Part shown: positions 2,257 through 37,524 of the stretch, piece after piece
Layout of the letters: each line of letters begins with the position of its first letter
Position numbering within the stretch: the first letter of the stretch is position 1
Source of the DNA: Caecitellus pseudoparvulus
Lineage: Eukaryota > Protista > Bigyra: Bicosoecida
Length of the DNA stretch: 64,000 bases
Direction: 5' to 3'
Assembly: GCA_965644315.1 (NCBI GenBank)
Contig: CBFFRQ010000069.1
Coordinates: forward strand, 1,240,001-1,304,000
Position numbers and translations under genes: made by a program
The notes under the pieces: model-generated
Seen by the model: only the letters and a program-made list of their open reading frames with translations
The model's database searches: none
What the model was told of the DNA's origin: nothing

Positions 2257-3826
2257 CGCTGCAGTTTCCTCATCCACTTTGCGGGTGCGCTTGCGTCTCA
2301 CGTACTTCCCGGAGCCGTCAAACGAAAGCTCCATCAGCCGCTTGACCTGCATGGCCGCCCCTTCTCCATCGCTGGTCTCCTCCATTGACAAGAGGATCGT
2401 GTACTTCAAATCTGTGGCCCCAGATGGGGCATCGGCTGGAGCATTCTTGCGATCCATGACAAACCGTCGCAGCACTGCTGCGTCTGCGCCAGAAATGTGG
2501 GTGGCTTCAGCCATAATGTTTGCCAAGAACTGTTCACGCTTGGCAACGGAGGGATCTTCGGCGCCAGATGGCGCAGGTGCTTGTGCGTGTGGTTCCCGGG
2601 CACGCTTGTGTCCCCCCACTCCCCCCGCCCGGGCAGCGGAAGAGAGCGCTGCCAGCGACTTTCCCTTGCGGAGGCGCGATGCAGCCTGCTTTTCTTTGGG
2701 CTGGGCTCGTTTGCGCTCGGCTTCTTTTTGTTTTTTCTCCTCGATGGCCTTGATCTCTGCCTTCACTGCCTCCTCCCGCTGCTTGAACAGGGCGCTCCAG
2801 TGCGAAATCTCAGTTGGCGCTGATTGATGACCAGGGTCAGGTGCTCCGACACTTGCATCAAGAAGGGAATCTAACTCATCCAAGTGGCTCAAATGGATCG
2901 ACAAGTGAGTTCCACCCTTCCCAGAAAGTCGGTAACCCGGCTGAAAGTGACCAGGAGGGCTGGCCAGTGCTGGGTCCGGCAGAGATGCGAGGAAGCTCCG
3001 CAGGTCTTGCTTGCCGCGCTCCTCAGCAGGGAGCGCCTCGACTCGACTGTCTACGAATTCAGAGCTATGCCCCCCCACTTGCTGCTTGCTGGGGCAGCCC
3101 AGATTTCCAGGGGCCACAAGGTGAGTGTAGCTTGAAGCTCGGTGGCTGGTGTACGGAGCTGGCGACTCGTCGCAGGCCTCGCCATCGACCACAGGAAGCT
3201 CCTTGCCTGTTGCCAGTGCTTCAAGAAGCGCCTTCTGTGCGTCTTCTAGAATGGATGAAAATGCAACCCCATCTGTGCAGGCGCTTAGAAGGAAGCAACG
3301 GTTCAACCGAGCTCGGCGCTTGAGGTGTGGGGTTCCACGTACATGCGGCTGCCATTTCGGCCACGAGCCCATCCAGTCGCGCATCTAAAGGTCCACACAG
3401 ATCCTTGTTTTCATGCTCGTCGATGGCTGGGCACAAGCGCACCACAAGCCCAGCTGTGATGGGCAGCCACTGCAGGTGAGGGAGGCCAGAGCGAGAGCCA
3501 GCCGGCTGCTGAGCGACGACGTGCACATCCCTTGCCAGCTGGAGACAGTCCATGAGCACCTGTTGGTTTTCATCATACCATCTTCGTGGCTTGCAAGCCA
3601 GCATGAACAACGCGTTTGCCTGGGTGTTGGACAGCGGGAGTTGAACAGCGCTGCACATGCCAAGAGGACTGTGTGCCTGCTCACGCACCAGGTTCCAGAC
3701 TTCGAAGTCATGCTGCACATCGGCAGCTGACTGGAGTGCTGCATGGACATGTGAAATATCGACATCAGCGAAGCGATGAGGCGTGAACCCGCCAGACATG
3801 CGCTCAGGAAGGGAGGGCTTGTCCAT
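2233..3826 (-). CDS. NELFA: Negative elongation factor A (NELF-A/WHSC2)-like protein; exons 3826-3689, 3619-3343, 3272-2233
   Basis: A GT-AG intron at 3273-3342 joins ORFs 3221..3826 and 2233..3384 in frame; a probable 3n intron lies at 3620-3688. N-terminal 'KPRRWYDENQQVLMDCLQLA...W' and C-terminal 'ATHISGADAAVLRRFV...YTILLS.E...LMELSFDGSGKYVRRKR' resemble the two conserved NELF-A regions as recalled. Confidence 0.7.
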
Positions 3827-26222: not shown

Positions 26223-27199
26223 ATGGCATCTGCGTCGAGCTCTGGGAAATACCCCTCCACGCCACACCTCCCCTTTAGCCCCGAGGTGAAAGATGACGAC
26301 ATTCAGCTGTCATCTGCTTCAGCCTTTGTCGGCCCAGAAGTCGTCGTGACAGAAAAGGTTAGGCAGGGCCGCCGAGTATGCCACACTCCACATCACTTCC
26401 CACCACGCCAACTTTCAGCTGGACGGGGGCAACTGCTGCGTCGTGGACGGCAAGGTGTACGCACGGACACATGCCCATGAAGCCACACATTCCTCCTTCT
26501 CTGCCAGTGCGTGTCCAGCAGCTGTGCTTCTCGCTGAGGCTCCTCGAGCTCTGCACACCCAACACATGTTGCTGGTGCAGTAAAGGAGCTTGCGCAGGAG
26601 TTTCTGTACTCAGGGGTGGTCCCAGAAGGCACGAAGCTGTATGGCGAGAATATGCTGGGCATTCACAGCATTATGTACGACGGCTTGGATTCCTTCTTTT
26701 ACCTCTTTGCCGTGCAGCAACCGGATGGTGGGTGCATGGCACAATAACGCGGAGCCAGCACGAGTGGCACCCCGATCCCTCCCTTCCTCGACAACGCCCA
26801 GGCACATTCGCAGCATGGGACGATGTCGCCGCCATGGCAGAGGCCCTTGGCATTCCAACCGCTCCTCTGGTGTTCCGCGGCCAGCTCTCTTCCCTTGCTC
26901 AGCTGGAAGCTCTCATGGTACAGCAGGCTGCCTTGCCCTCTCGTGTGTCTTCCCAGCCGCCAGAGGAAGTCGCCAGTCTGGCAAAAGAGTCCACTGCTTC
27001 TGTCCCCTCGGATAGTTCGGTGCCTACTCCTGAAGGGTTTGTTGTCAGGGTTGCGGCGGCCTTTGGCGCTGATGAGTTTGGCTCTTCCATGGCGAAGTTC
27101 GTGCGGGCCGGCCATGTGCAAACTGACGCGAGGTGGCGGGACACTTGGAAAAAGGCTTCGCTACACGCCAATACTAAGCGGGTAAAGGAGTCGAAATGA
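26223..27199 (+). CDS. ATP-dependent RNA ligase (nucleotidyltransferase superfamily), 4 exons
   Basis: Introns 26358-26418, 26507-26580 and 26728-26801. The spliced protein has 'KYPSTPHLPFSP', motif I 'TEK|LDGGN', 'YAR', 'LYGEN', 'FYLFAV', 'EGFVV' and 'KFVRAGHVQTD..W'. Confidence 0.88.
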
Positions 27200-27237
27200 A
27201 TCGCGTTGTGCATTGCCACCTCACGCTGGGGCGCGAA

Positions 27238-30200
27238 TCACTTGTTGAAGGCCACTTCCCCGGCCGCCGCGCCAGAAGCAGGCCTGCTACCGGGGCGAGG
27301 TGTGCCGGCGCTGGAGTCAGGGCGAGACGCAGCTCGCGAGGCTGCATCCCGCGCCACCTCGACGCCTTCCGTAAAGGCGAGGAACCATGCGTGAAAGCGG
27401 TGCACCAGCATGAACGGCGAGGCGCGAACCAGGCGAGGCAGCTCCTCCCCATGCTCCTCCAAGAGTCCCCGCACCACGGACCGGGAGTCTTCATCGATCT
27501 GTTCCCGGGCCAGCTTCACGAAGAACTGCAAGATGTCAGGCTCCTCCAGGACCTTGCGGGTGTACTTCCAAGACGGCTTCACGCCCAGCAAGACGCAAAT
27601 GCCGCCGGCAATGATCACGCTCTCCTGCGTGACAGGGCGCTGTCGGCGGAAGGTGTTGATGTCGTGGCGTGTGAGGTCCAGCAGGCCACGCCGAGAGCGC
27701 CCCAGTGTCGTGGACAGCTTCAAGTCGTCCATGGCCTTGGCTTGCGTCCACTGCCTCAGCCGCATTTTCGCTCGCCAAGCCAAGGACCGGAACACTGCAC
27801 GGGCGGTCATGGCACAGACGCCCTCCTTGGTCGGGTCGAAGTGCTCCACAAAGCGAATAACCTTAGCGGTGCTGTTGGAAGGGTACGTTGGGACTGAGCG
27901 GTCGTGGCCGGAATCAACTGACCGCTCTCCTACGCTGCTCGCATCCCCGGCTGCCATCTTTGCTCGTGAGCGGATGCGGGCGAGTTTCCTCTCTTCAAGC
28001 CCCACGTACGAGAACTGCACGGCAGACATACGCGCAGACCGAGGGAGGGGAACATCTGAGAGGGCCATCTTGGAATCAGACAGCAGCGCGATGAGCCACC
28101 GGAGGAAGGTGCTCAGCACCCGACCGCTGCTGCGTTCGCGGCTCCTGGACAAGCCATGCAGGCGGCGGCTGCCCATGAGGGTGGCTAAAACATGCCGCAT
28201 GCGCTCTGACACGGCTCCTTGCTTGATGTTCACGAGCCCAGAGAGCAGTTCCAGCGGCTGTGCGAACAAGGCCCGGGCAGACTGCCAGGAAGGCTGGCTG
28301 CGAGTGAGGATGCAAATGGCCGACGCCACGACTGCCATGGCAGGCGAGCCAGGGTCCACCTTCTGCAACCCTGCCACCTCCTCCGCGGAGAGGCTAGCCA
28401 AAGCTTGCCTGGCTTCTTTCAGCGTAAGCACCGGCTCGTCTGGGGTGTGTGCACGTGCTGCCTGTGCCTCTTCTTCGCTGTCGTCGTCTTCCGGGTTGGA
28501 CCCTGCCGCGCTGCCAGCCTTCATGCGCAACCCTGCCCGAATGGCCTCGCCAGCGCTCTTCAGCGTCGGAGTGCTGCGCATGTTGCTGGCTGTCGCCTTG
28601 CGCTCCAGCTCCATTCGTTTGAAGTGGCGAGTGTAGTGGTCCAGGTGCTCAGGGCTCACGAACTGCCCCTGCTTCTTGAACACGTCAGAGACGTGGTCGC
28701 CCTCGGACACCTCTGCAGCAGCTGCTATGGCTGCTGCAGCAGCAGCTTCTTCTGGGTTCTCGTAGCCTAACTCCCGGTAATGCTCCACGACCTCTTGGTC
28801 AACCTTCGCGCCCAGGCCCTTTGCCAGGCTGGCCTTCTCCTTGGGGTTCCACCACGACATGAGAAGGCACCAACGGTGCAAAATCTGCAAAGCCCCCACA
28901 TCCACTCCAGCCTTCTCAAGGTCCTCCGCCGTTGCGGCGCGATTTGCCGAGCCCTTGAAGGCCTTCGCAATATCCACAGCACTGCCGCTGCCAGACAAGG
29001 CGCTTCCCCCACTGCCCAGGAATTGCACGCCTGCCTCACCATCCCCAGCTTGCGGGGCATAGGGTCGCGTCAAGTTTCCCTGCGTGCTTGGACGGCCAAG
29101 CTGTGAGGTTGACGCAGAGCCAGACATGGCTGCCTCATCCGGGATCGGAGACAAGCCCCCACGGGCCCTGGCTGCAGCCCTTCTGCTCATGATCGCCATG
29201 CTAGCTGCTGTGCGCAGGCGCCTGGCCTTCACTTCCTTCATGCCACCGTACAAGTCAGCCATGGAGGCGCCATGGGACAAAGTGCGGCCCATGGTGGCCT
29301 GCTTCACCAGCCCCTGCACGTCCACAATTGCCTTTGCGTGGGCTGGGTGCTTGCGCAGCACCCGGCGTGAGACACGGCGGCTCTTCTCCTCCAGCAGCGA
29401 CGGATGCACCATGGACAGCTTCTTCAGGAACCCACGCTTGCGGATGACTTTCTTCGCTGTGCTCCAAGACGGCTTCGGCACGTTCAGCAGCACACACAGG
29501 GAGCCTGCCACGACCACCATGTCTTGGGTCGGCTTCGGAGTCTGCACCAGCTCGGTCATCTGCTCCGCTGTGATGTTCAGAACTTGTCCCGAGATGGCAT
29601 CGATGGCCTCTTGGCTGACCTTCAAGTCGCGGAAAGAGGACACCGAGCCAGTGTCAGAGTCACTCTCGCCCATTTCGCTCACAGCAACTACTTCGATGCC
29701 TGATGGGTTGCGAGACTTGGCTGCCTCACGCCGTGCCGCTCGGGCTCGAGCGGCGGCCTGAATGGCAGCCGCAGCCCGATTCTCCACAGATGTACTTGCG
29801 TCCCACAGCGCCAAGTTCAGCGCCCATGCGCGCAGTGCGTGGGCGGATTCAGCCTGCACTTCAGACTCGTCTTGTGCCGTCTCCAGGCCCACCAACACAG
29901 CAAGGGCATCGTCTTCCCCCACTGAATCCTCCTTGCCTTGGCCGGCATGGAAGCCCTCCGCCCCCCCTTCACTGCGGCCAGGGCTCACCTTGGGAGAGGC
30001 GTACGAGGCCGTGCTGGGAACGTAGCCCTTGTGCATGCGAGGTGCGTGAGAGGTGTCCCTGCTGTCGTGCACATCCTTGGGAGCCAAACGGGCGAAGTGC
30101 GCAAAGTCGTCAGGGAAAGAACCCGTTGCGTGGCAAGCTTTGTCGTGGTCGGGAAGCAGTCGAAGCACGGCCAGGGCTCGCTGACGGCGCTCGTCCGGGA

Positions 30201-33200
30201 TTTGGTAAGGCAGTGTGGTGGTCAGCTTGTGTTGCAAGTCTCCAGACTGCAGCATGGCCTTGACCATGTCCCAGGTTGGGTTTTCCACACCCAGCAAGAC
30301 GGCAGAAGCTGCCAAGGCAACAACTGTGGGTGGCGCCAGTGGGTCCATGGCACCCACAGCAGGCAGATGCCCAGGAGGCAGCATGCCCACAGCATCACTG
30401 CTTACATCGGTGTGGTAGGGTGTGATCTTGACCTTCTCTTCCTTCCTCAGTGAAAGGCCCTCGCCAGACTCTGTGCCTTCCGCGTGCTTGACCAGCACAC
30501 GTTGCACATCCTTCCACGCTGACTCACATGCCACCTCAGCCTGCCGATGCTGGGCAGTCTGGCGCCCTTGCATGCCCCGGAAAGCGCTCTGGATGGCAAC
30601 TGCTGCCTTGCGCTCAACACGACGGCACTCCACCTGCTCTGCCGCCACGTGGCCTCTGAACACTCGTTGAATGTTTGTTGCAGCCCGGTCTTCGCGGATG
30701 TGCTGAGCCTTCCGCCGCGCAAGGTGGCCCTTCGCGACTCTGGTGAGCTGCTCAGCAGCCGCTGCTTCCTTCGCCGCCTGCTCAGCTTGCATCTGGGTGT
30801 ACTGGGTTCGTGCCTGGCGGCCACGCGCCAAGGACTGAATGCGAACGGCGGCATCTCGCTCCCTTCGCACCTGGGCTGCTTCTTTTCGCCCCTGGTGGCC
30901 ACGCCACAGCTTCTGCATAGAGGTTGTTGCGTCGTGCATCTCGGCTTGAGTGGGCATGGCTGCCACCTCCTGGCGTTCAAACCAGTCGTCCATGCTGCGG
31001 ATGTCGTGCTGGACGTTGCGGGGATCGTGCCGCTCCTCCTCGTCCAGATCTTCACGGCGTGGCGACTGCCGTGGGCGACCGCGCTTACCTTCGTGGAAGT
31101 CCACCATGCTGTACCCATCACTGCCCAATGTTCGACCTAGGGGTGCTGTGCTTCGAGGCCGCAGAGGGTCTAGTCGCCCTTGCCTGTGGCTCGCGCGGCC
31201 GTGATCTGCTGCTCGGTCCCGCCGGGAGGACTCCAAGAACTCTTGGAATGTAGCAGGGGGGGGAGCCTGGTCACGGTGCGGTGCATGGGCAAACTTTGAA
31301 GGTTGCGCTAGCTCGCGACGAGAACGGGGGTCCCCCTTTGTCGGCTCGTTGCCCATGCTGCCCTTGCTGCCCTCGCTCCATGAGGGAGCGCCAGACATGC
31401 CCCTCGCTGTGCTGCTCAAAGCATCCATACCCGACGGGTCACCTGGTGACCCAGGTGGAGAATCGTGCCGCCGCCCTGCGCCAGCTCCCTTGCTCTTGGA
31501 TGGCCCTTGTTCTCGTGTGGAGGGAGGTGCTTCGCCCCTGATGGCCGCGTTCATGGCGTCTTCTTCATCCAGCACCTCTGTAAGGTCAGCTACGTCCGGC
31601 TGCCAGGTGAGGCCCATGTTCAAGTTCAGCCCGGCATCCAAGACGTGTGATTCTGGATCAGCCATGTCATACGCTTGGTCAGGGAGGGCGACCAAAACAT
31701 CGCCATCCTCTAGTTGTCTTGGAGGAATGGGTGTCACAGGCCCGGAGTCATCGGTATCCTCCTCTTCCCGTGCCACTGCCAGGGCCCCTGCGGGCTGGTG
31801 AGCCTGTGGAATCCGGCCGGCCAAATGTCGGGTCGCAGCATCTGGCGTTACGGAGGAGGTGTCCGGGGCAATGCTGGCCAGCTGAGTGGTGTAGTGGTTG
31901 GGCGCCACCCCACACGCGCCCAGCGCCGCAGCCGTCCCCCGAGCCACCGTCGGCACCGCCGTACCCAGCTCCGTGCGCGCTGCCACAGCCCCATGCGCAT
32001 CCAGCAAGTCCACCACCACAGGCTCCGCTGCCGTCGTCGTCACCGCCACCTGATCCGTCGAGATGCCCAGGTCGTGCAGCACACCAGCTGTCAACTGGAT
32101 GTCCAACTCCGTCAAACCACCCCGCAAAGGCCGCCCCTCCTCGTCCCACTGCTGAGGCGGCAGCTCCACAGCCACCACCTCCCCTGCGATGCGCACACCC
32201 ACCGCAGTCGCGCTCGGTGCCAGTGCATGCAGGGAGTCCTTGTCCAAGCGCAAGTGCAGTGTGCCCACCACCTCGTCCTCACCAGCCCCTCCCTCGCCGC
32301 TCTGCAGCGCCTTCGCCGTTGCCTCTGTCAAGGCGGTGTACCCCACCTGCGCTCGCAGCAGGGGCTGGCACACACCCGACTCGATGCCCTCGGCCGTCAC
32401 GACAGACTTCTTGCCGTCGCCAGATGGCGTCACGGCCCCCGTGTTTCGGCGGGGTGAAGTGACGCCGGCGCCCACTTGCGTCTCGTGCATGCGGCCCCAC
32501 TGAGGCGTGCCGGATGTGCTGGCAGGGGGCTTGTCCTCAGAATCCTTGGCCTCCACTTTCGCGGCGTCAGCGGCGGGTGAGCTGCCCTCTTCGCTGGCCT
32601 GGCCCAGAAACTCTCGAAGAGCCGATGCCGCGTCGTCCGTCAACGGCAGCGCACCCGCACTCCCACCACCCTCAGGCGACTGGTGCTCCAACAACGCAGC
32701 TGCCAGGCCCTGCAGCGCCACATCGCCCATGTCGTGCAGACCCGTGTGCCCCACCTTCACGCCGTTCTCGTCACGCACCAGCACATCCATCCCCCCACGA
32801 CCCTCCTCACCCAGCACCTCGCTTAGCGGCAAGTGCACCACCACACGCCCTGCGGCATCGCCATCGCCTTGCGCGCCTGCCCAGTGACCGCTGTACTTCC
32901 CGCCGCCCGCGCCACGCACCACCACGCGCCCATCCTCACCACGAGTGCGCACTTCCACAAACGCCGGCGTGCCGCCAGTGCTGCCGGACTTGTCATCACC
33001 CAGGACGCTGAGCACAACACCAGCAGTGCCGGCCTCACCACCTGCTTCGTCGTGCTCATCCATCTCCAGCAGGATTGCAGTCAACGCAGCCTTCACAGCG
33101 GCAGGCCTGCTCCTTGCCGACTGGGCCCCGGCCTTGTCGAGGTCCTTCAGCATCCGCCCCAACAAACGCACCGCAGCCCCATCCAACACCGGCGCGTAGT

Positions 33201-36200
33201 CCAAACGCACACTCATTTGACCCACACGCCCAGCCACACCGCCTCCTTCCCCAGCCTCCGCCTCCTCCGCACTCCGGAACACGCCCTGCACACTGTGCCG
33301 TGTGGCCAGGACTGGCGTCACATCGAATGCCTGTGCGTCGGCAAGGGCGCCTTCCTGCACCTGGTTGATGACGACGCCACGCTTGGCGGTGGTGGACTGC
33401 AGCATTCGGCCACCAACCGTCTCCTTCACCTTGGCCTGCAGACGGGGCTTGCACAGGTCATCCTCGCCATCCTTGCTCGGGGGAGGAGGCCGGTATCCAG
33501 GAGAGCCAGGGCGGTTGTTGACAACGTGGGGCACGGGCACAGCCGTCCTGTCGTACTCCACCTGAGTTGTGTCAGGCACCAGAGCTCCCAGCCGGGAGGT
33601 GTAGTGGTTGGGCGCCACCCCACACGCGCCCAGCGCCGCAGCCGTCCCCCGAGCCACCGTCGGCACCGCCGTACCCAGCTCCGTGCGCGCTGCCACAGCC
33701 CCATGCGCATCCAGCAAGTCCACCACCACAGGCTCCGCTGCCGTCGTCGTCACCGCCACCTGATCCGTCGAGATGCCCAGGTCGTGCAGCACACCAGCTG
33801 TCAACTGGATGTCCAACTCCGTCAAACCACCCCGCAAAGGCCGCCCCTCCTCGTCCCACTGCTGAGGCGGCAGCTCCACAGCCACCACCTCCCCTGCGAT
33901 GCGCACACCCACCGCAGTCGCGCTCGGTGCCAGTGCATGCAGGGAGTCCTTGTCCAAGCGCAAGTGCAGTGTGCCCACCACCTCGTCCTCACCAGCCCCT
34001 CCCTCGCCGCTCTGCAGCGCCTTCGCCGTTGCCTCTGTCAAGGCGGTGTACCCCACCTGCGCTCGCAGCAGGGGCTGGCACACACCCGACTCGATGCCCT
34101 CGGCCGTCACGACAGACTTCTTGCCGTCGCCAGAGGGCGTCACGGCCCCCGTGTTTCGGCGGGGTGAAGTGACGCCGGCGCCCACTTGCGTCTCGTGCAT
34201 GCGGCCCCACTGAGGCGTGCCGGATGTGCTGGCAGGGGGCTTGTCCTCAGAATCCTTGACTCGGACCGTTGCTGGCGCTTCCGTCGGCCCCTGGAGCGAC
34301 TTGCGCTGCCCGAGGAATCGACGCAAGGCCGATGCCGCGTCGTCCGTCAACGGCAGCGCACCCGCACTCCCACCACCCTCAGGCGACTGGTGCTCCAACA
34401 ACGCAGCTGCCAGGCCCTGCAGCGCCACATCGCCCATGTCGTGCAGACCCGTGTGCCCCACCTTCACGCCGTTCTCGTCACGCACCAGCACATCCATCCC
34501 CCCACGACCCTCCTCACCCAGCACCTCGCTTAGCGGCAAGTGCACCACCACACGCCCTGCGGCACCGTCGCCACCACCCGCTGCAGCCAGCTGGGCGTTT
34601 TGCGCGCCTGCCCAGTGACCGCTGTACTTCCCGCCGCCCGCGCCACGCACCACCACACGCCCATCCTCACCACGAGTGCGCACTTCCACAAACGCCGGCG
34701 TGCCGCCAGTGCTGCCGGACTTGTCATCACCCAGGACGCTGAGCACAACACCAGCAGTGCCGGCCTCCCCTCCACCAGCGCTGCCGTGGCTGTCCATTTT
34801 CTGCAGCATGGTAGTCAGCACTGCCTTCAGCTTCTGCTCCTCTTGCTCCGTCATGCTCTTCCTGGACTCGTCAGAAGCGTCAACGGATGCCATGCCCTCA
34901 GCAGCACTGTTGAGGTCCTTCAGCATCCGCCCCAACAAACGCACCGCAGCCCCATCCAACACCGGCGCGTAGTCCAAACGCACACTCATCTGACCCACAC
35001 GCCCAGCCACACCGCCTCCTTCCCCAGCCTCCGCCTCCTCCGCACTCCGGAACACGCCCTGCACACTGTGTCGTGTGGCCAGGACCGGCGTCACATCGAA
35101 TGCCTGTGCGTCGGCAAGGGCGCCTTCCTGCACCTGGTTGATGACGACGCCGCGCTTGGCGGTGGTGGACTGCGACCGCTTGTCGCCCAGCGTCTCTGTA
35201 ACCTGGGCGAACAAGGTTCGAGGGATGGGGGCGGGTGGCGCTTCGGGCTTTGGCTTGCGGCCGCCGCGCCGCTGGGGCGCAGGTGCCGCTGCCCCCTCCG
35301 CAGCACCTTCCTGTGGGTGTGCCGCGCGTTGCGGCGGCTTGCTTGATGCGCCAGGTGTGCTGCCTGCACCTGCGGTTGGCACTCCAGCTGCCTGCTTCGC
35401 CAGCTGCTCAGCCTTCGCAGCCGCGGCAGAGTCCCTCGACGCCTGGGCTTGAGCAGTGGCAGCCGCAGCCTCTGCCTTCGCTTGCTCGCGGCGCGAGACA
35501 GCTTGGTCCCGCCCTTGAAGGATGACATCGGCCAGAGGGATGCGGAGCACGCCCAGTGTCTCCTCCTCAGGCTCGCCGTCGGAGTCCAAGCCAGGCTGCC
35601 CGGTGGGCAGCGCACGCAGCATCACCTCGATTGCGTCGTCTGCCTGGACATCCCCTGCGTTCAGGGGTACGAGGAGCACCGCGTTCATGGAGGTGGGGTC
35701 CACTGCACCATCTGCGTCCTGATCGGGGTCCGCCCCGATCCGAAGCAGCTCGCTGCCCACCCGCTTCCCGCACACGTACACGTCAGCAGCTGCGGTGCTG
35801 TCCCCCATGAGCTCAGCGAGGCCCTGAACATTGTTCAAGCGCACTGTCAGCGTGCCTTTAGCCCGCGGCAGCAGCTTCACTGGCTCCTGGGCGGGTGGGG
35901 GCGGCACCTTGCCGCGTGCCTGGGGTGTGGGGGGTGCAGACGCAGCCTCCTTTGAAGCCCGCGCGACGCTGACGGGTGTGTACCCGAGGGGATACTGTGT
36001 GGGGGGGTAGGCAGTGCCAAAGCCGGCTGCCCCCAGCTCCCCAAAGCCATCAGCACCACCTGCACCTGCTCCGCCTGTGGGCCCACCGCCGCGTGGATGA
36101 AGGTCTGGGTAACCTGTGATGCCACCCACGCCAATGGTGCCTGGAGAGCCGTCGCCGTCAATGCCGTGCTGCTGTGCATACCGGTGCCACAGCTCGTACA

Positions 36201-37326
36201 GTTCAGTGGGGTCCTGCTGACCTTGGTTGTAGCGCGGCCTGCGCCGACTGATGGCGCGGTTTGCCTCTCGCCCCACAGACAGCCGCCGCTTGCGGGTTTG
36301 CGGCGGGTCGTACACTGGCACCTTGGGCATGGGGACAGGCTTGGGCCCGTGTGAGTAAATGTACTGAGCGACGGCAAGCCGAGCAGCAATAGCGTCAGGG
36401 ACGCCTGGGAGGCCCCGGTCCTGCACGATGCCCACCCGGCGCAGCATGCCTGGCGTGAGGTTCACAAGGCCAGCCGGGCCGGTGCTGGACGCGAGAAGGG
36501 AGGTGTCCAGGACGGCACCGCCGCCCCTGGTCGTGCGAGCCGAGCGCGGGGGAGCGTACGCCCTCGGAGACGCCATGGGGTCTCCCTCGTCCCACAGTTC
36601 GTCCGGGACCCTCGCAGACTCGGAGGTCGCACCGCGACGCGCTGATCGGGAGCCGCCCTGCATGGCGCTGCGCAGGCCCTTGAGCGAGAGCGACTTCATG
36701 GGCCGCGACAAATCCCTGCTGCGAGGTTGCATGCGGGCAATTCGAGGGGATGAGGCCTGGGGCTTGCGCCTGCGAGCCTCGCTGAGCTGGCGCCTGAGCT
36801 CAACCGCCTCCTCGTCCACGCGAGTCGGCGAGTGAAAGCCACGGCGACGAGAGCGAGAGGGAGACACCCCGTCCGCAAAGATGGTGCGTCTGCCATAGGT
36901 GCACGCGCGTGCGTACGTGCCCCGCACGTCGTGGTCCTTCTCCTCGGCGCTGTCGTCAGATCGTGCGTCAAACTCGAAGTCGCTTGCGGCCGCCCGCCAC
37001 CTTGCCCGGGGCGTCGTGCCGAGCGCTGTAGCTGCGTACACTGCACTGCCTGCAGGCCCCTGCTGCCTTGCGAGCGGAATGATGGGCTGGTGCTGCGCGG
37101 CGGCCCGGATGGTGGCTTCACGGGCCTTGGCCGAGCGCAGGTCGGCAGCTGCTGTCATGGAAGAGTACAGCTGCGAAATGCGCTCTGGAGACATGCCCCC
37201 CTCCTGCCCAGCGCCATGACGCTGGTCACGAGTGACTGGGAAGGCTGATGCAGGTGGTGCACGGTGGGAATACCCGCCCTGTGTGCCTCGCTGCACGCCT
37301 TGGCTGCGAGTCTGGCGGTGCTGCAT
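27238..37326 (-). CDS. ~3360-aa protein: disordered N-terminus, duplicated beta-rich (C2-like) block, IQ motifs, four dynein-MTBD-like repeats
   Basis: Single ORF 27238..37380, first ATG 37326. IQ motifs 'IQSLARGRQAR', 'IQRVFRGH', 'IQSAFRGMQGR' (~30555-30920). Four repeats resembling the dynein stalk tip lie at ~27370-30390. Confidence 0.8.
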   Translation of the reverse strand: MQHRQTRSQGVQRGTQGGYSHRAPPASAFPVTRDQRHGAGQEGGMSPERISQLYSSMTAAADLRSAKAREATIRAAAQHQPIIPLARQQGPAGSAVYAATALGTTPRARWRAAASDFEFDARSDDSAEEKDHDVRGTYARACTYGRRTIFADGVSPSRSRRRGFHSPTRVDEEAVELRRQLSEARRRKPQASSPRIARMQPRSRDLSRPMKSLSLKGLRSAMQGGSRSARRGATSESARVPDELWDEGDPMASPRAYAPPRSARTTRGGGAVLDTSLLASSTGPAGLVNLTPGMLRRVGIVQDRGLPGVPDAIAARLAVAQYIYSHGPKPVPMPKVPVYDPPQTRKRRLSVGREANRAISRRRPRYNQGQQDPTELYELWHRYAQQHGIDGDGSPGTIGVGGITGYPDLHPRGGGPTGGAGAGGADGFGELGAAGFGTAYPPTQYPLGYTPVSVARASKEAASAPPTPQARGKVPPPPAQEPVKLLPRAKGTLTVRLNNVQGLAELMGDSTAAADVYVCGKRVGSELLRIGADPDQDADGAVDPTSMNAVLLVPLNAGDVQADDAIEVMLRALPTGQPGLDSDGEPEEETLGVLRIPLADVILQGRDQAVSRREQAKAEAAAATAQAQASRDSAAAAKAEQLAKQAAGVPTAGAGSTPGASSKPPQRAAHPQEGAAEGAAAPAPQRRGGRKPKPEAPPAPIPRTLFAQVTETLGDKRSQSTTAKRGVVINQVQEGALADAQAFDVTPVLATRHSVQGVFRSAEEAEAGEGGGVAGRVGQMSVRLDYAPVLDGAAVRLLGRMLKDLNSAAEGMASVDASDESRKSMTEQEEQKLKAVLTTMLQKMDSHGSAGGGEAGTAGVVLSVLGDDKSGSTGGTPAFVEVRTRGEDGRVVVRGAGGGKYSGHWAGAQNAQLAAAGGGDGAAGRVVVHLPLSEVLGEEGRGGMDVLVRDENGVKVGHTGLHDMGDVALQGLAAALLEHQSPEGGGSAGALPLTDDAASALRRFLGQRKSLQGPTEAPATVRVKDSEDKPPASTSGTPQWGRMHETQVGAGVTSPRRNTGAVTPSGDGKKSVVTAEGIESGVCQPLLRAQVGYTALTEATAKALQSGEGGAGEDEVVGTLHLRLDKDSLHALAPSATAVGVRIAGEVVAVELPPQQWDEEGRPLRGGLTELDIQLTAGVLHDLGISTDQVAVTTTAAEPVVVDLLDAHGAVAARTELGTAVPTVARGTAAALGACGVAPNHYTSRLGALVPDTTQVEYDRTAVPVPHVVNNRPGSPGYRPPPPSKDGEDDLCKPRLQAKVKETVGGRMLQSTTAKRGVVINQVQEGALADAQAFDVTPVLATRHSVQGVFRSAEEAEAGEGGGVAGRVGQMSVRLDYAPVLDGAAVRLLGRMLKDLDKAGAQSARSRPAAVKAALTAILLEMDEHDEAGGEAGTAGVVLSVLGDDKSGSTGGTPAFVEVRTRGEDGRVVVRGAGGGKYSGHWAGAQGDGDAAGRVVVHLPLSEVLGEEGRGGMDVLVRDENGVKVGHTGLHDMGDVALQGLAAALLEHQSPEGGGSAGALPLTDDAASALREFLGQASEEGSSPAADAAKVEAKDSEDKPPASTSGTPQWGRMHETQVGAGVTSPRRNTGAVTPSGDGKKSVVTAEGIESGVCQPLLRAQVGYTALTEATAKALQSGEGGAGEDEVVGTLHLRLDKDSLHALAPSATAVGVRIAGEVVAVELPPQQWDEEGRPLRGGLTELDIQLTAGVLHDLGISTDQVAVTTTAAEPVVVDLLDAHGAVAARTELGTAVPTVARGTAAALGACGVAPNHYTTQLASIAPDTSSVTPDAATRHLAGRIPQAHQPAGALAVAREEEDTDDSGPVTPIPPRQLEDGDVLVALPDQAYDMADPESHVLDAGLNLNMGLTWQPDVADLTEVLDEEDAMNAAIRGEAPPSTREQGPSKSKGAGAGRRHDSPPGSPGDPSGMDALSSTARGMSGAPSWSEGSKGSMGNEPTKGDPRSRRELAQPSKFAHAPHRDQAPPPATFQEFLESSRRDRAADHGRASHRQGRLDPLRPRSTAPLGRTLGSDGYSMVDFHEGKRGRPRQSPRREDLDEEERHDPRNVQHDIRSMDDWFERQEVAAMPTQAEMHDATTSMQKLWRGHQGRKEAAQVRRERDAAVRIQSLARGRQARTQYTQMQAEQAAKEAAAAEQLTRVAKGHLARRKAQHIREDRAATNIQRVFRGHVAAEQVECRRVERKAAVAIQSAFRGMQGRQTAQHRQAEVACESAWKDVQRVLVKHAEGTESGEGLSLRKEEKVKITPYHTDVSSDAVGMLPPGHLPAVGAMDPLAPPTVVALAASAVLLGVENPTWDMVKAMLQSGDLQHKLTTTLPYQIPDERRQRALAVLRLLPDHDKACHATGSFPDDFAHFARLAPKDVHDSRDTSHAPRMHKGYVPSTASYASPKVSPGRSEGGAEGFHAGQGKEDSVGEDDALAVLVGLETAQDESEVQAESAHALRAWALNLALWDASTSVENRAAAAIQAAARARAARREAAKSRNPSGIEVVAVSEMGESDSDTGSVSSFRDLKVSQEAIDAISGQVLNITAEQMTELVQTPKPTQDMVVVAGSLCVLLNVPKPSWSTAKKVIRKRGFLKKLSMVHPSLLEEKSRRVSRRVLRKHPAHAKAIVDVQGLVKQATMGRTLSHGASMADLYGGMKEVKARRLRTAASMAIMSRRAAARARGGLSPIPDEAAMSGSASTSQLGRPSTQGNLTRPYAPQAGDGEAGVQFLGSGGSALSGSGSAVDIAKAFKGSANRAATAEDLEKAGVDVGALQILHRWCLLMSWWNPKEKASLAKGLGAKVDQEVVEHYRELGYENPEEAAAAAAIAAAAEVSEGDHVSDVFKKQGQFVSPEHLDHYTRHFKRMELERKATASNMRSTPTLKSAGEAIRAGLRMKAGSAAGSNPEDDDSEEEAQAARAHTPDEPVLTLKEARQALASLSAEEVAGLQKVDPGSPAMAVVASAICILTRSQPSWQSARALFAQPLELLSGLVNIKQGAVSERMRHVLATLMGSRRLHGLSRSRERSSGRVLSTFLRWLIALLSDSKMALSDVPLPRSARMSAVQFSYVGLEERKLARIRSRAKMAAGDASSVGERSVDSGHDRSVPTYPSNSTAKVIRFVEHFDPTKEGVCAMTARAVFRSLAWRAKMRLRQWTQAKAMDDLKLSTTLGRSRRGLLDLTRHDINTFRRQRPVTQESVIIAGGICVLLGVKPSWKYTRKVLEEPDILQFFVKLAREQIDEDSRSVVRGLLEEHGEELPRLVRASPFMLVHRFHAWFLAFTEGVEVARDAASRAASRPDSSAGTPRPGSRPASGAAAGEVAFNK
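31888..33400. repeat. Copy A of a near-identical intragenic tandem duplication
   Basis: 31888-32548 matches 33598-34258 with one substitution seen (32425/34135). Further near-identical blocks extend to 33400/35173. Confidence 0.95.
33598..35173. repeat. Copy B of a near-identical intragenic tandem duplication
   Basis: Direct repeat of 31888-33400. The offset changes from 1710 to 1773 because of in-frame divergent patches. Confidence 0.95.
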
Positions 37327-37524
37327 CGTGGCAGGGGCAGAAAAGTAGCCACAGCAGCCTGCGCTGGGGGAGCAGAGCACGGGGCCAGTGGCCGGACTGA
37401 GGAAGAGTACTGAAGAGCCTGCACTTCCTTAGAGTGCCCAGCTGGTGGCACAGGGTCGCGTTGAATTGTGAGCAGGCAGCAGAAGTGCGGCGGCTTCGGT
37501 GGGCGCACAAGCGATGGCTGGCGC

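Follow-up and report, generated by a model that had tools for sequence, protein, structure and literature searches.

The minus strand of a 64,000-nucleotide stretch of the Caecitellus pseudoparvulus genome (contig CBFFRQ010000069.1, positions 1,240,001 to 1,304,000; this whole stretch is called the window, and positions are counted from its first letter) carries a gene for a protein of 3,362 residues (aa) whose C-terminal part holds four tandem units resembling the microtubule-binding domain (MTBD) of dynein heavy chains, preceded by a neck of IQ motifs. On balance, we consider the product to be probably a giant motor-less microtubule-associated protein (MAP) that serves as a multivalent static tether or cross-linker, not as a motor. 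Its coding sequence (27238..37326, minus strand, taken from the list of open reading frames (ORFs) and their translations) runs from the first ATG at 37326 to a stop codon at 27238-27240, within a frame of 3,380 codons (27238-37380) that is open for 10.1 kb.

Four tandem units behind an IQ neck

The first-pass annotation of this DNA had described four peptides, each with an L/F-x-x-W helix behind it, and all of these elements were recovered at the reported positions in a single minus-strand frame, in the last third of the ORF. Numbered U1 to U4 from the N-terminal side, the peptides occupy aa 2353-2377 (30250-30324), 2610-2655 (29416-29553), 3015-3039 (28264-28338) and 3255-3278 (27547-27618), and the helices LRAWAL, LHRWCL, FLRWLI and FHAWFL lie at 29818-29835, 28864-28881, 28090-28107 and 27379-27396, respectively. 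The units are related to each other as proposed: since pairwise phmmer comparisons gave E-values of 1e-7 for U2 and U4, 1e-4 for U3 and U4 and 4e-3 for U1 and U2 (calculated for a notional one million sequences, Z=1e6), the repeat is not due to chance. The unit alignment reveals a common pattern of L..L, a proline, V.VA..C.LL and PSW, with a basic residue at +4 from this tryptophan and an arginine further on. The last ~1,060 residues of the protein carry the four units, which are joined by flexible linkers of ~110-250 residues.

Two of the units are compact MTBD-like domains, namely U3 (aa 2979-3106, 28063..28446, minus strand like every feature of this gene), which is matched by the family hidden Markov model (HMM) with 99 bits and full profile coverage, and U4 (aa 3218-3343, 27352..27729), delimited by AlphaFold (AF2), Foldseek and VIA-align comparisons. 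In both, a second tryptophan helix lies ~55 residues past the first tryptophan. The earlier description, in which a W helix follows each unit, has to be corrected for U1 and U2, where this helix does not adjoin the core and stands ~140-180 residues downstream, after an insert. The U2 core (aa 2585-2695, 29296..29628; HMM 60 bits, AF2 pLDDT >92) and the distal helices with LHRWCL (aa 2829-2859, 28804..28896) are separated by a mostly disordered insert of ~135 residues, and because the distant W helix completes the bundle in the AF2 model, U2 is predicted to be a split domain with its insert between helices H5 and H6. U1 appears to be split at the same place. Its core, which extends from a stub of the helix CC1 to H5 (aa 2322-2425, 30106..30417; unit alignment, family HMM 36.5 bits), is the most diverged of the four, and an ~80-residue insert precedes its distal helix with LRAWAL, assigned by motif position to the H6/CC2 part (aa 2505-2530, 29791..29868). 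The distal W column of U1 aligns with the near-invariant second W of the family, as judged from the alignment. Between U1 and U2, a loose regular expression also picks out an extra IQ-like motif, AAAIQAAARARAARR (29710..29772), outside the Pfam-significant stretches.

Directly N-terminal of U1 lies the IQ-motif neck (30532..30918; Pfam PF00612 and regular expression), which comprises four canonical motifs of the consensus [IL]Q...RG...R (aa 2155, 2181, 2237 and 2263; regular-expression positions span 30562-30918) and a degenerate one (~aa 2205-2225). PF00612 recognizes four stretches at 36.1-44.7 bits against a cut-off of 20.3, with an E-value of 3.5e-9 for the whole protein and 6e-12 for its C-terminal piece, which bears out the earlier observation that IQ motifs adjoin the units. 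The description of the protein as motor-less also holds for the whole ORF, where a regular-expression search found neither GxxxxGK[ST] nor the Walker A variant [AG]xxxxGK[ST] and Pfam found no AAA or dynein domain; IQ was the sole family detected when the complete protein, each of the four units and seven pieces of the N-terminal part were scanned. There is likewise no long stalk, as the units match the ~120-residue core only and the flanking CC1 and CC2 helices measure ~10-14 residues in the models. Because the AAA+ ring and the long stalk, both defining for a dynein, were tested for and are absent, the protein is not a dynein heavy chain.

Relationship to the dynein MTBD

That the units match the dynein heavy-chain MTBD, as first suggested from a residue pattern, is strongly supported by unit-only profiles, by the predicted structures of U4 and U2 and by language-model features. 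A profile of the four units alone, searched against all sequences of the Protein Data Bank (PDB), returned dynein heavy chains as its first 36 matches (best E 1.2e-7), and its best alignment pairs profile positions 2-112 with residues 3291-3398 of human DYNC1H1, which is the full MTBD from end to end. The best E-value fell to 2.3e-8 for a profile of eight units from this protein and one paralog, and in both searches the first 35-36 PDB matches were all dynein MTBDs. Among protein-language-model (atlas) features, 28 of the 30 nearest clusters belong to PF12777. A further profile, A4, was dropped as independent evidence of homology; it contains real dynein fragments and scores the dyneins of this genome with up to 131 bits.

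The repeats also model as the MTBD helical bundle. For U4, the AF2 model has a pLDDT of 94.4, and the top ~30 Foldseek matches are all dynein MTBDs with TM scores of 0.74-0.79 and root-mean-square deviations (rmsd) of 1.6-2.5 Å. Alignment of this model by VIA-align (VIA) with eleven dynein MTBD structures gave Z 15.2-10.7 and rmsd 2.0-3.0 Å over 114-117 residues, the best being Z 15.2 with rmsd 2.0 Å over 116 residues. The U2 model, built with its insert, has a core pLDDT >92, falls below 50 in the insert (model residues 163-232) and recovers to 80-96 in the helix with LHRWCL (245-258); against dynein MTBDs it reaches Z 13.8 with 122 residues aligned that span model residues 3-265. The best MTBD superpositions of the two models (Z 15.2 and 13.8) have rmsd 2.0-2.5 Å, and both models contain a six-helix bundle between antiparallel CC1 and CC2 helices. 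In an exhaustive comparison of U4 with 48,161 chains, nothing unrelated to microtubules exceeded Z 7. Outside the dynein MTBDs, the matches were two chains associated with microtubules, 9fqr_Xl (Z 9.4) and 9ya2_L (Z 9.1), and three rows at Z 5.6-6.9, and unrelated folds reached ~Z 4 or less.

With the dynein MTBD (the PF12777 core; 3ERR, 6RZB, 8I3J), the units share the six-helix bundle with CC1 and CC2 stubs, the P..V..A.C.LL pattern, the invariant H3 tryptophan with a basic residue at +4 and the second tryptophan in CC2. They have no 'flap' between H2 and H3, in which they resemble cytoplasmic and some inner-arm dyneins. Unlike a dynein, the protein has four copies of the domain instead of one and neither an antiparallel stalk nor an AAA+ ring; in two of the copies, inserts of 80-135 residues separate H5 from H6, and the units are too diverged for the Pfam model and miss several of the charges that we take to contact tubulin. 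Profiles and models together argue that the units are true, diverged MTBD homologues with short CC1 and CC2 stubs and no stalk. U4 is the most dynein-like of the four.

Selection, paralogs and relatives

Across 26900-32500, contigs from RNA and DNA libraries are collinear with the window without joints, so that no intron was seen in the part examined. Contigs of a reverse-transcription PCR (RT-PCR) RNA library tile 27100-31600 at >=99% identity, and those of a polyA library span 27787-28294 and 29017-29172. These contigs fit an expressed, intron-free C-terminal half, with DNA carry-over in the libraries being possible. The gene is under purifying selection, since 31 of 37 natural variants between runs (84%) are synonymous in the minus frame, where 25% would be expected (binomial p 1e-13). 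The unit cores contain eight variants, every one of them synonymous, and the six replacement variants lie outside the cores and affect linkers, the insert of U2 and one IQ position that is variable. The stretch is present in runs of 12 public studies, including marine metagenomes, cultures under five organism labels and metatranscriptomes.

The 30.6-Mb genome assembly (215 contigs) contains five multi-unit motor-less ORFs, three of them with IQ motifs. Besides the present gene, these are the C68 paralog (a 3,184-aa frame with four units and IQ motifs), the C57 paralog (1,745 aa, three units), the C65 paralog (1,863 aa, 3-5 units, varying with the profile used) and a second C69 gene ~349 kb upstream (1,843 aa, three units), whose IQ match is borderline at 19.4 bits, under the 20.3 cut-off. 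P0002, the public protein of the C68 paralog, is collinear with this protein, with four units in the same order at 33-46% identity, and also has the U1 and U2 inserts and the distal W helices. In a BLASTP comparison, the first 2,100 aa showed no significant similarity to the C68 paralog, and only short motifs in repeated modules are common to the two.

In a search of 1.84 billion proteins, the unit profile retrieved 688 at E <=1e-3, many of them short and with 2-6 units. The named matches were the Cafeteria roenbergensis proteins KAA0161316.1, KAA0178163.1 and KAA0166116.1, one protein each from Picozoa and Cyanophora paradoxa, and one transcript of the Marine Microbial Eukaryote Transcriptome Sequencing Project (MMETSP). 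Among named proteins, the three from Cafeteria are the closest relatives; with 954-1,861 aa they are shorter, and they differ in unit number and are hypothetical and unannotated. In KAA0166116.1, an IQ cluster (128 bits) precedes three diverged MTBD-like units, and the arrangement 'IQ, then MTBD units' is thus common to different genera.

A domain tree was computed quickly from few columns, has many open forks and weak support, and was used for position grouping only. In it, all 16 units of the genome cluster together with those of Cafeteria and with two from one metagenomic protein (SH-aLRT 90), and subgroups follow unit position as U3-type, U4-type and U1/U2-type; the units of KAA0166116.1 group with the U3-type and U4-type units of this protein. 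Because units group by position, the tandem array would be older than the paralogs. For the 'liberated motor module' of the earlier interpretation, the grouping of units by position with paralogs and Cafeteria, in this weak tree, points to an old event instead of a recent one.

Motor-less proteins with 2-6 tandem MTBD units also occur in Cyanophora paradoxa (EP00741_P000183), Picozoa (COSAG02_P067298) and metagenomes (P0020, P0021, P0031). These tandem 'MT' proteins differ from the present one: their units pass PF12777 at 90-207 bits in 2-5 stretches, carry ~45 coiled-coil residues at either end and are placed among dyneins in the tree, and no IQ family was found in the five proteins scanned at E <=0.01. 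P0020 is encoded by a complete gene (746 aa) that has unrelated genes as neighbours in a contig of 51 kb, and motor-less tandem MTBD proteins are, on these sequences, both real and widespread. They may have more than one origin, with the 'MT' proteins perhaps separate from the clade of this protein and Cafeteria. Some tandem forms are already labelled PF12777 in databases, and our literature searches for a described motor-less or MTBD-like protein family returned nothing relevant.

A structural match leads further afield. Chain L of 9YA2, from a Toxoplasma intraconoidal microtubule, aligns with U4 at Z 9.1 (116 residues, chain range 1211-1453) and with U2 at Z 8.6, and from its length and residue numbers and the text of the paper we infer that it is ICMAP2 (TGME49_224700). 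ICMAP2 has 1,678 aa, of which ~10% is resolved on ICMT-1; dimers of its globular domain are reported to sit between protofilaments 3 and 4 at intervals of 8 nm, with each copy touching a pair of unassigned helices, and deletion of the protein makes the two intraconoidal microtubules come apart (PMC12819142). The ICMAP2 papers report no recognizable domain and do not mention the dynein MTBD (PMC10774369, PMC12819142). Like the present protein, ICMAP2 is a non-motor protein, it appears to have the same fold, and like U1 and U2 its domain would span a long insert, as 162 residues are modelled within 1211-1453; it differs in having one resolved domain instead of a tandem array, and in its dimer between protofilaments 3 and 4. 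By these model comparisons, 9ya2_L appears to be the one solved chain that has the full fold and clearly does not belong to a dynein, and it is microtubule-bound. If the link holds, a motor-less copy of the fold could, by analogy, both bind and cross-link microtubules. Other MTBD-like matches are residues 1346-1487 of chain Xl of 9FQR from a bovine sperm doublet (Z 9.4), which could be a dynein fragment with shifted numbering, chain 2e of 9E5C, an axonemal chain of T. brucei (Z 6.9), and, in part, a Chlamydomonas radial-spoke chain (7JTK chain C, Z 9.4; 7JRJ chain I, Z 5.6).

The N-terminal part of the protein has features of another kind. Residues 500-660 (35401..35883) may form a C2-like domain: at least 25 of the 30 nearest atlas clusters are C2 families (score 0.92, 149-161 shared features), and Pfam found no C2 match in this region. 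Its wording, G.L.V.L ... DVYV, is C2-like, and the atlas points to the C2 and RPGRIP1-C families; the corresponding region of the C68 paralog has about ten tandem 173-aa modules with a similar 'G.v..Rv.YAP' ending. Two largely identical blocks of ~570 aa with beta-type modules follow (aa 737-1310 and 1328-1880, 31741..35172), recognized by exact common runs of 58-220 residues; Pfam found no family in them (aa 737-1880). In the second block, the contigs of two runs replace 72 bases at 32548-32621 with 69 others, and the repeat region thus differs between strains.

On the plus strand, many ORFs of 80-408 aa lie opposite the gene between 27196 and 31253, for example 27410-28636, and because the DNA is GC-rich and the variants follow the synonymous pattern of the minus frame, they are taken to be artefacts. 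A word-index protein search with the whole protein, including its C-terminal region, found no match among proteins of 1,850-5,885 aa, and with the C-terminal piece it found the identical record, one paralog and nothing else. The identical public protein, P0001, carries the label 'Symbiodinium sp. KB8'. Against this label stand the GC content of the window (57-70%), the dense genes with few introns, among them 10-kb intron-free genes, the nearest named relatives in Cafeteria, and the occurrence in many unrelated cultures and in seawater. We infer that the record stems from a contaminating marine heterotrophic flagellate, possibly related to bicosoecids.

At other loci, the same genome encodes at least 20 real dynein heavy chains whose PF12777 stalks are full-length, so the organism is a flagellate with a full dynein set. 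Two of the stalk regions (C54:381354-382424 and C45:6892-7962; L043, L044) have identical translations, reflecting either a very recent duplication or a single gene assembled twice. Two more (C30:506917-507957 and C18:1288537-1289523) lie within very long frames of 9,404 and 7,016 aa, which suggests that additional domains are fused to these heavy chains or extend them. Genes for alpha- and beta-tubulin (C78:265473-269090, C80:81151-88410 and C13:320975-324352; L019, L022-L024) have introns near their 5' ends, and two beta-tubulin copies stand head to head on C80. These spliced genes contrast with the 10-kb gene, which has no splice joint in the examined C-terminal half and a frame open throughout.

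Proposed role and alternatives

The affinity of the dynein MTBD is set by sliding of the stalk helices. In the protein described here, each unit would bind the outer surface of the microtubule lattice like a dynein MTBD, and since there is no stalk to shift helix registry and hence affinity, binding would be constitutive. Four units on flexible linkers of ~110-250 residues would provide avidity, and their span could extend over several tubulin dimers, to adjacent protofilaments or to adjacent microtubules. Light chains of the calmodulin type would sit on the IQ neck, and the ~2,100-residue N-terminal part, with its possible C2-like domain and beta-rich blocks, would attach the microtubule elsewhere, perhaps to a membrane. 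The earlier proposals of microtubule binding or cross-linking, of control by calmodulin or centrin and of a role in flagellar roots would follow from the domain content and from a single structural analogue, the Toxoplasma chain taken to be ICMAP2.

The dynein MTBD binds the tubulin intradimer interface via H1, H3 and H6 (PMC6629372). We mapped the units manually onto mouse dynein through the unit alignment and the PDB profile alignment, and the basic residue four positions after the invariant H3 tryptophan is kept in all four units. U2 (net charge +10) and U3 (+8) are strongly basic and U4 has a net charge of +1; U2 has gained a basic cluster besides its three kept contact positions. From contact positions and net charges, U4 and U2 would be the likeliest binders, and U1 may have another role.

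Several results weigh against the proposed role as a microtubule tether. Seven basic positions in H1, H3 and H6, which we take to be the tubulin contacts of dynein (K3299 alone is confirmed in a paper), are only partly kept, with ~4-5 of the seven in U4, three in U2, two in U3 and one in U1, and U1 has an acidic net charge of -3. Predicting a complex between U4 and tubulin gave a score of 0.00 and no verdict, and is counted neither way; it used approximate tubulins (the alpha-tubulin of the genome from one exon, minus ~7 N-terminal residues, and a 95%-identical metagenomic beta-tubulin). The Pfam check proposed at the outset failed, as PF12777, a model of 344 positions that are mostly stalk, gave no match to the whole protein or to a single unit with the threshold relaxed to E 10. 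The AlphaFold models are not fully independent of the dynein hypothesis, because real dynein MTBD fragments were among the sequences in their input alignments; the unit-only profiles are free of this dependence. ICMAP2 is linked by structure only, and Z 9 is moderate for a helical bundle; 9ya2_L was absent among the matches listed for the A2, A4 and A5 profiles and for the Cafeteria protein, and the ICMAP2 site, a dimer between protofilaments, may be other than that of dynein. The C2 reading of the N-terminal part is a language-model lead only.

Among the alternatives, it is possible, if rather unlikely, that the units are true MTBD homologues that do not bind tubulin and have been re-used as protein-protein modules, making the protein a scaffold. 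The contact charges that we presume are mostly gone from U1 and U3, and U1 is acidic, as one would expect under this alternative; the fold is, moreover, partly similar in the Chlamydomonas radial-spoke chain (7jtk_C, Z 9.4; 7jrj_I, Z 5.6). However, several basic contact positions are kept in U4 and U2, the basic residue at W+4 is kept in every unit, and the strong positive charge of U2 and U3 suits the acidic surface of a microtubule. The sole clearly non-dynein solved chain that appears to have the full fold, 9ya2_L, is also bound to a microtubule (PMC12819142).

Far less probable is a decaying dynein remnant, or an artefact of assembly or annotation. The units do escape Pfam, and the N-terminal two thirds are of low complexity with a large internal duplication, but the frame is open over 10.1 kb, and the excess of synonymous variants (84% against 25%) already contradicts this reading. 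The order of the four units is kept in a paralog of only 33-46% identity and units group by position with Cafeteria; a dynein, furthermore, has one MTBD and not four, and the stretch recurs in runs of 12 studies that include RNA libraries. We regard it as just as improbable that the likeness to the MTBD is convergent or a matter of chance and that the units are small helical repeats of some other origin. In pairwise comparison they are only 13-20% identical to dynein MTBDs, the best Foldseek E-value is a modest 8e-3, and middling Z scores are common for small helical bundles. Yet the unit-only profile ranks 36 dynein MTBDs first, in register and end to end, the same profile recovers tandem proteins that pass the Pfam cut-off, and the exhaustive structure search produced nothing unrelated to microtubules above Z 7. 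A multivalent, motor-less microtubule tether or cross-linker is the reading that we prefer.

More tentatively, and with confidence that falls a little short of evenly balanced, the dynein tip may be a free-standing, repeatable module that founded an old, undescribed family of protist MAPs. ICMAP2 would be an unrecognized solved member of this family, and the present protein and the four paralogs would be its tandem forms with IQ motifs, which tether or cross-link microtubules with the 8-nm spacing of tubulin. To our knowledge, the dynein MTBD has been described only as the tip of a motor's stalk. The nearest described idea is that of DNAHX and DNHD1, which are dynein-derived and no longer motors (PMC11785096). 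They differ in keeping the whole heavy chain with a dead AAA1 site and are the opposite case, with the ring kept and the MTBD impaired; the MTBD of DNAHX also has disordered inserts (PMC11785096). New here are the split-domain architecture proposed for U1 and U2, the finding that units cluster by position with those of Cafeteria, the evidence of selection drawn from natural variants and the structural link to ICMAP2.

If these proteins form a conserved family, they would represent a new class of microtubule-binding module for non-motor MAPs. The units would then offer a natural 'registry-free' MTBD in which to study what sets affinity, and a domain could be proposed for Toxoplasma ICMAP2, which is needed for rhoptry discharge and for which 'no recognizable domain' has been reported. 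Cafeteria-like bicosoecid flagellates are abundant marine grazers. In such flagellates, if our reading is true, the family described here could point to organizers of the microtubular roots.

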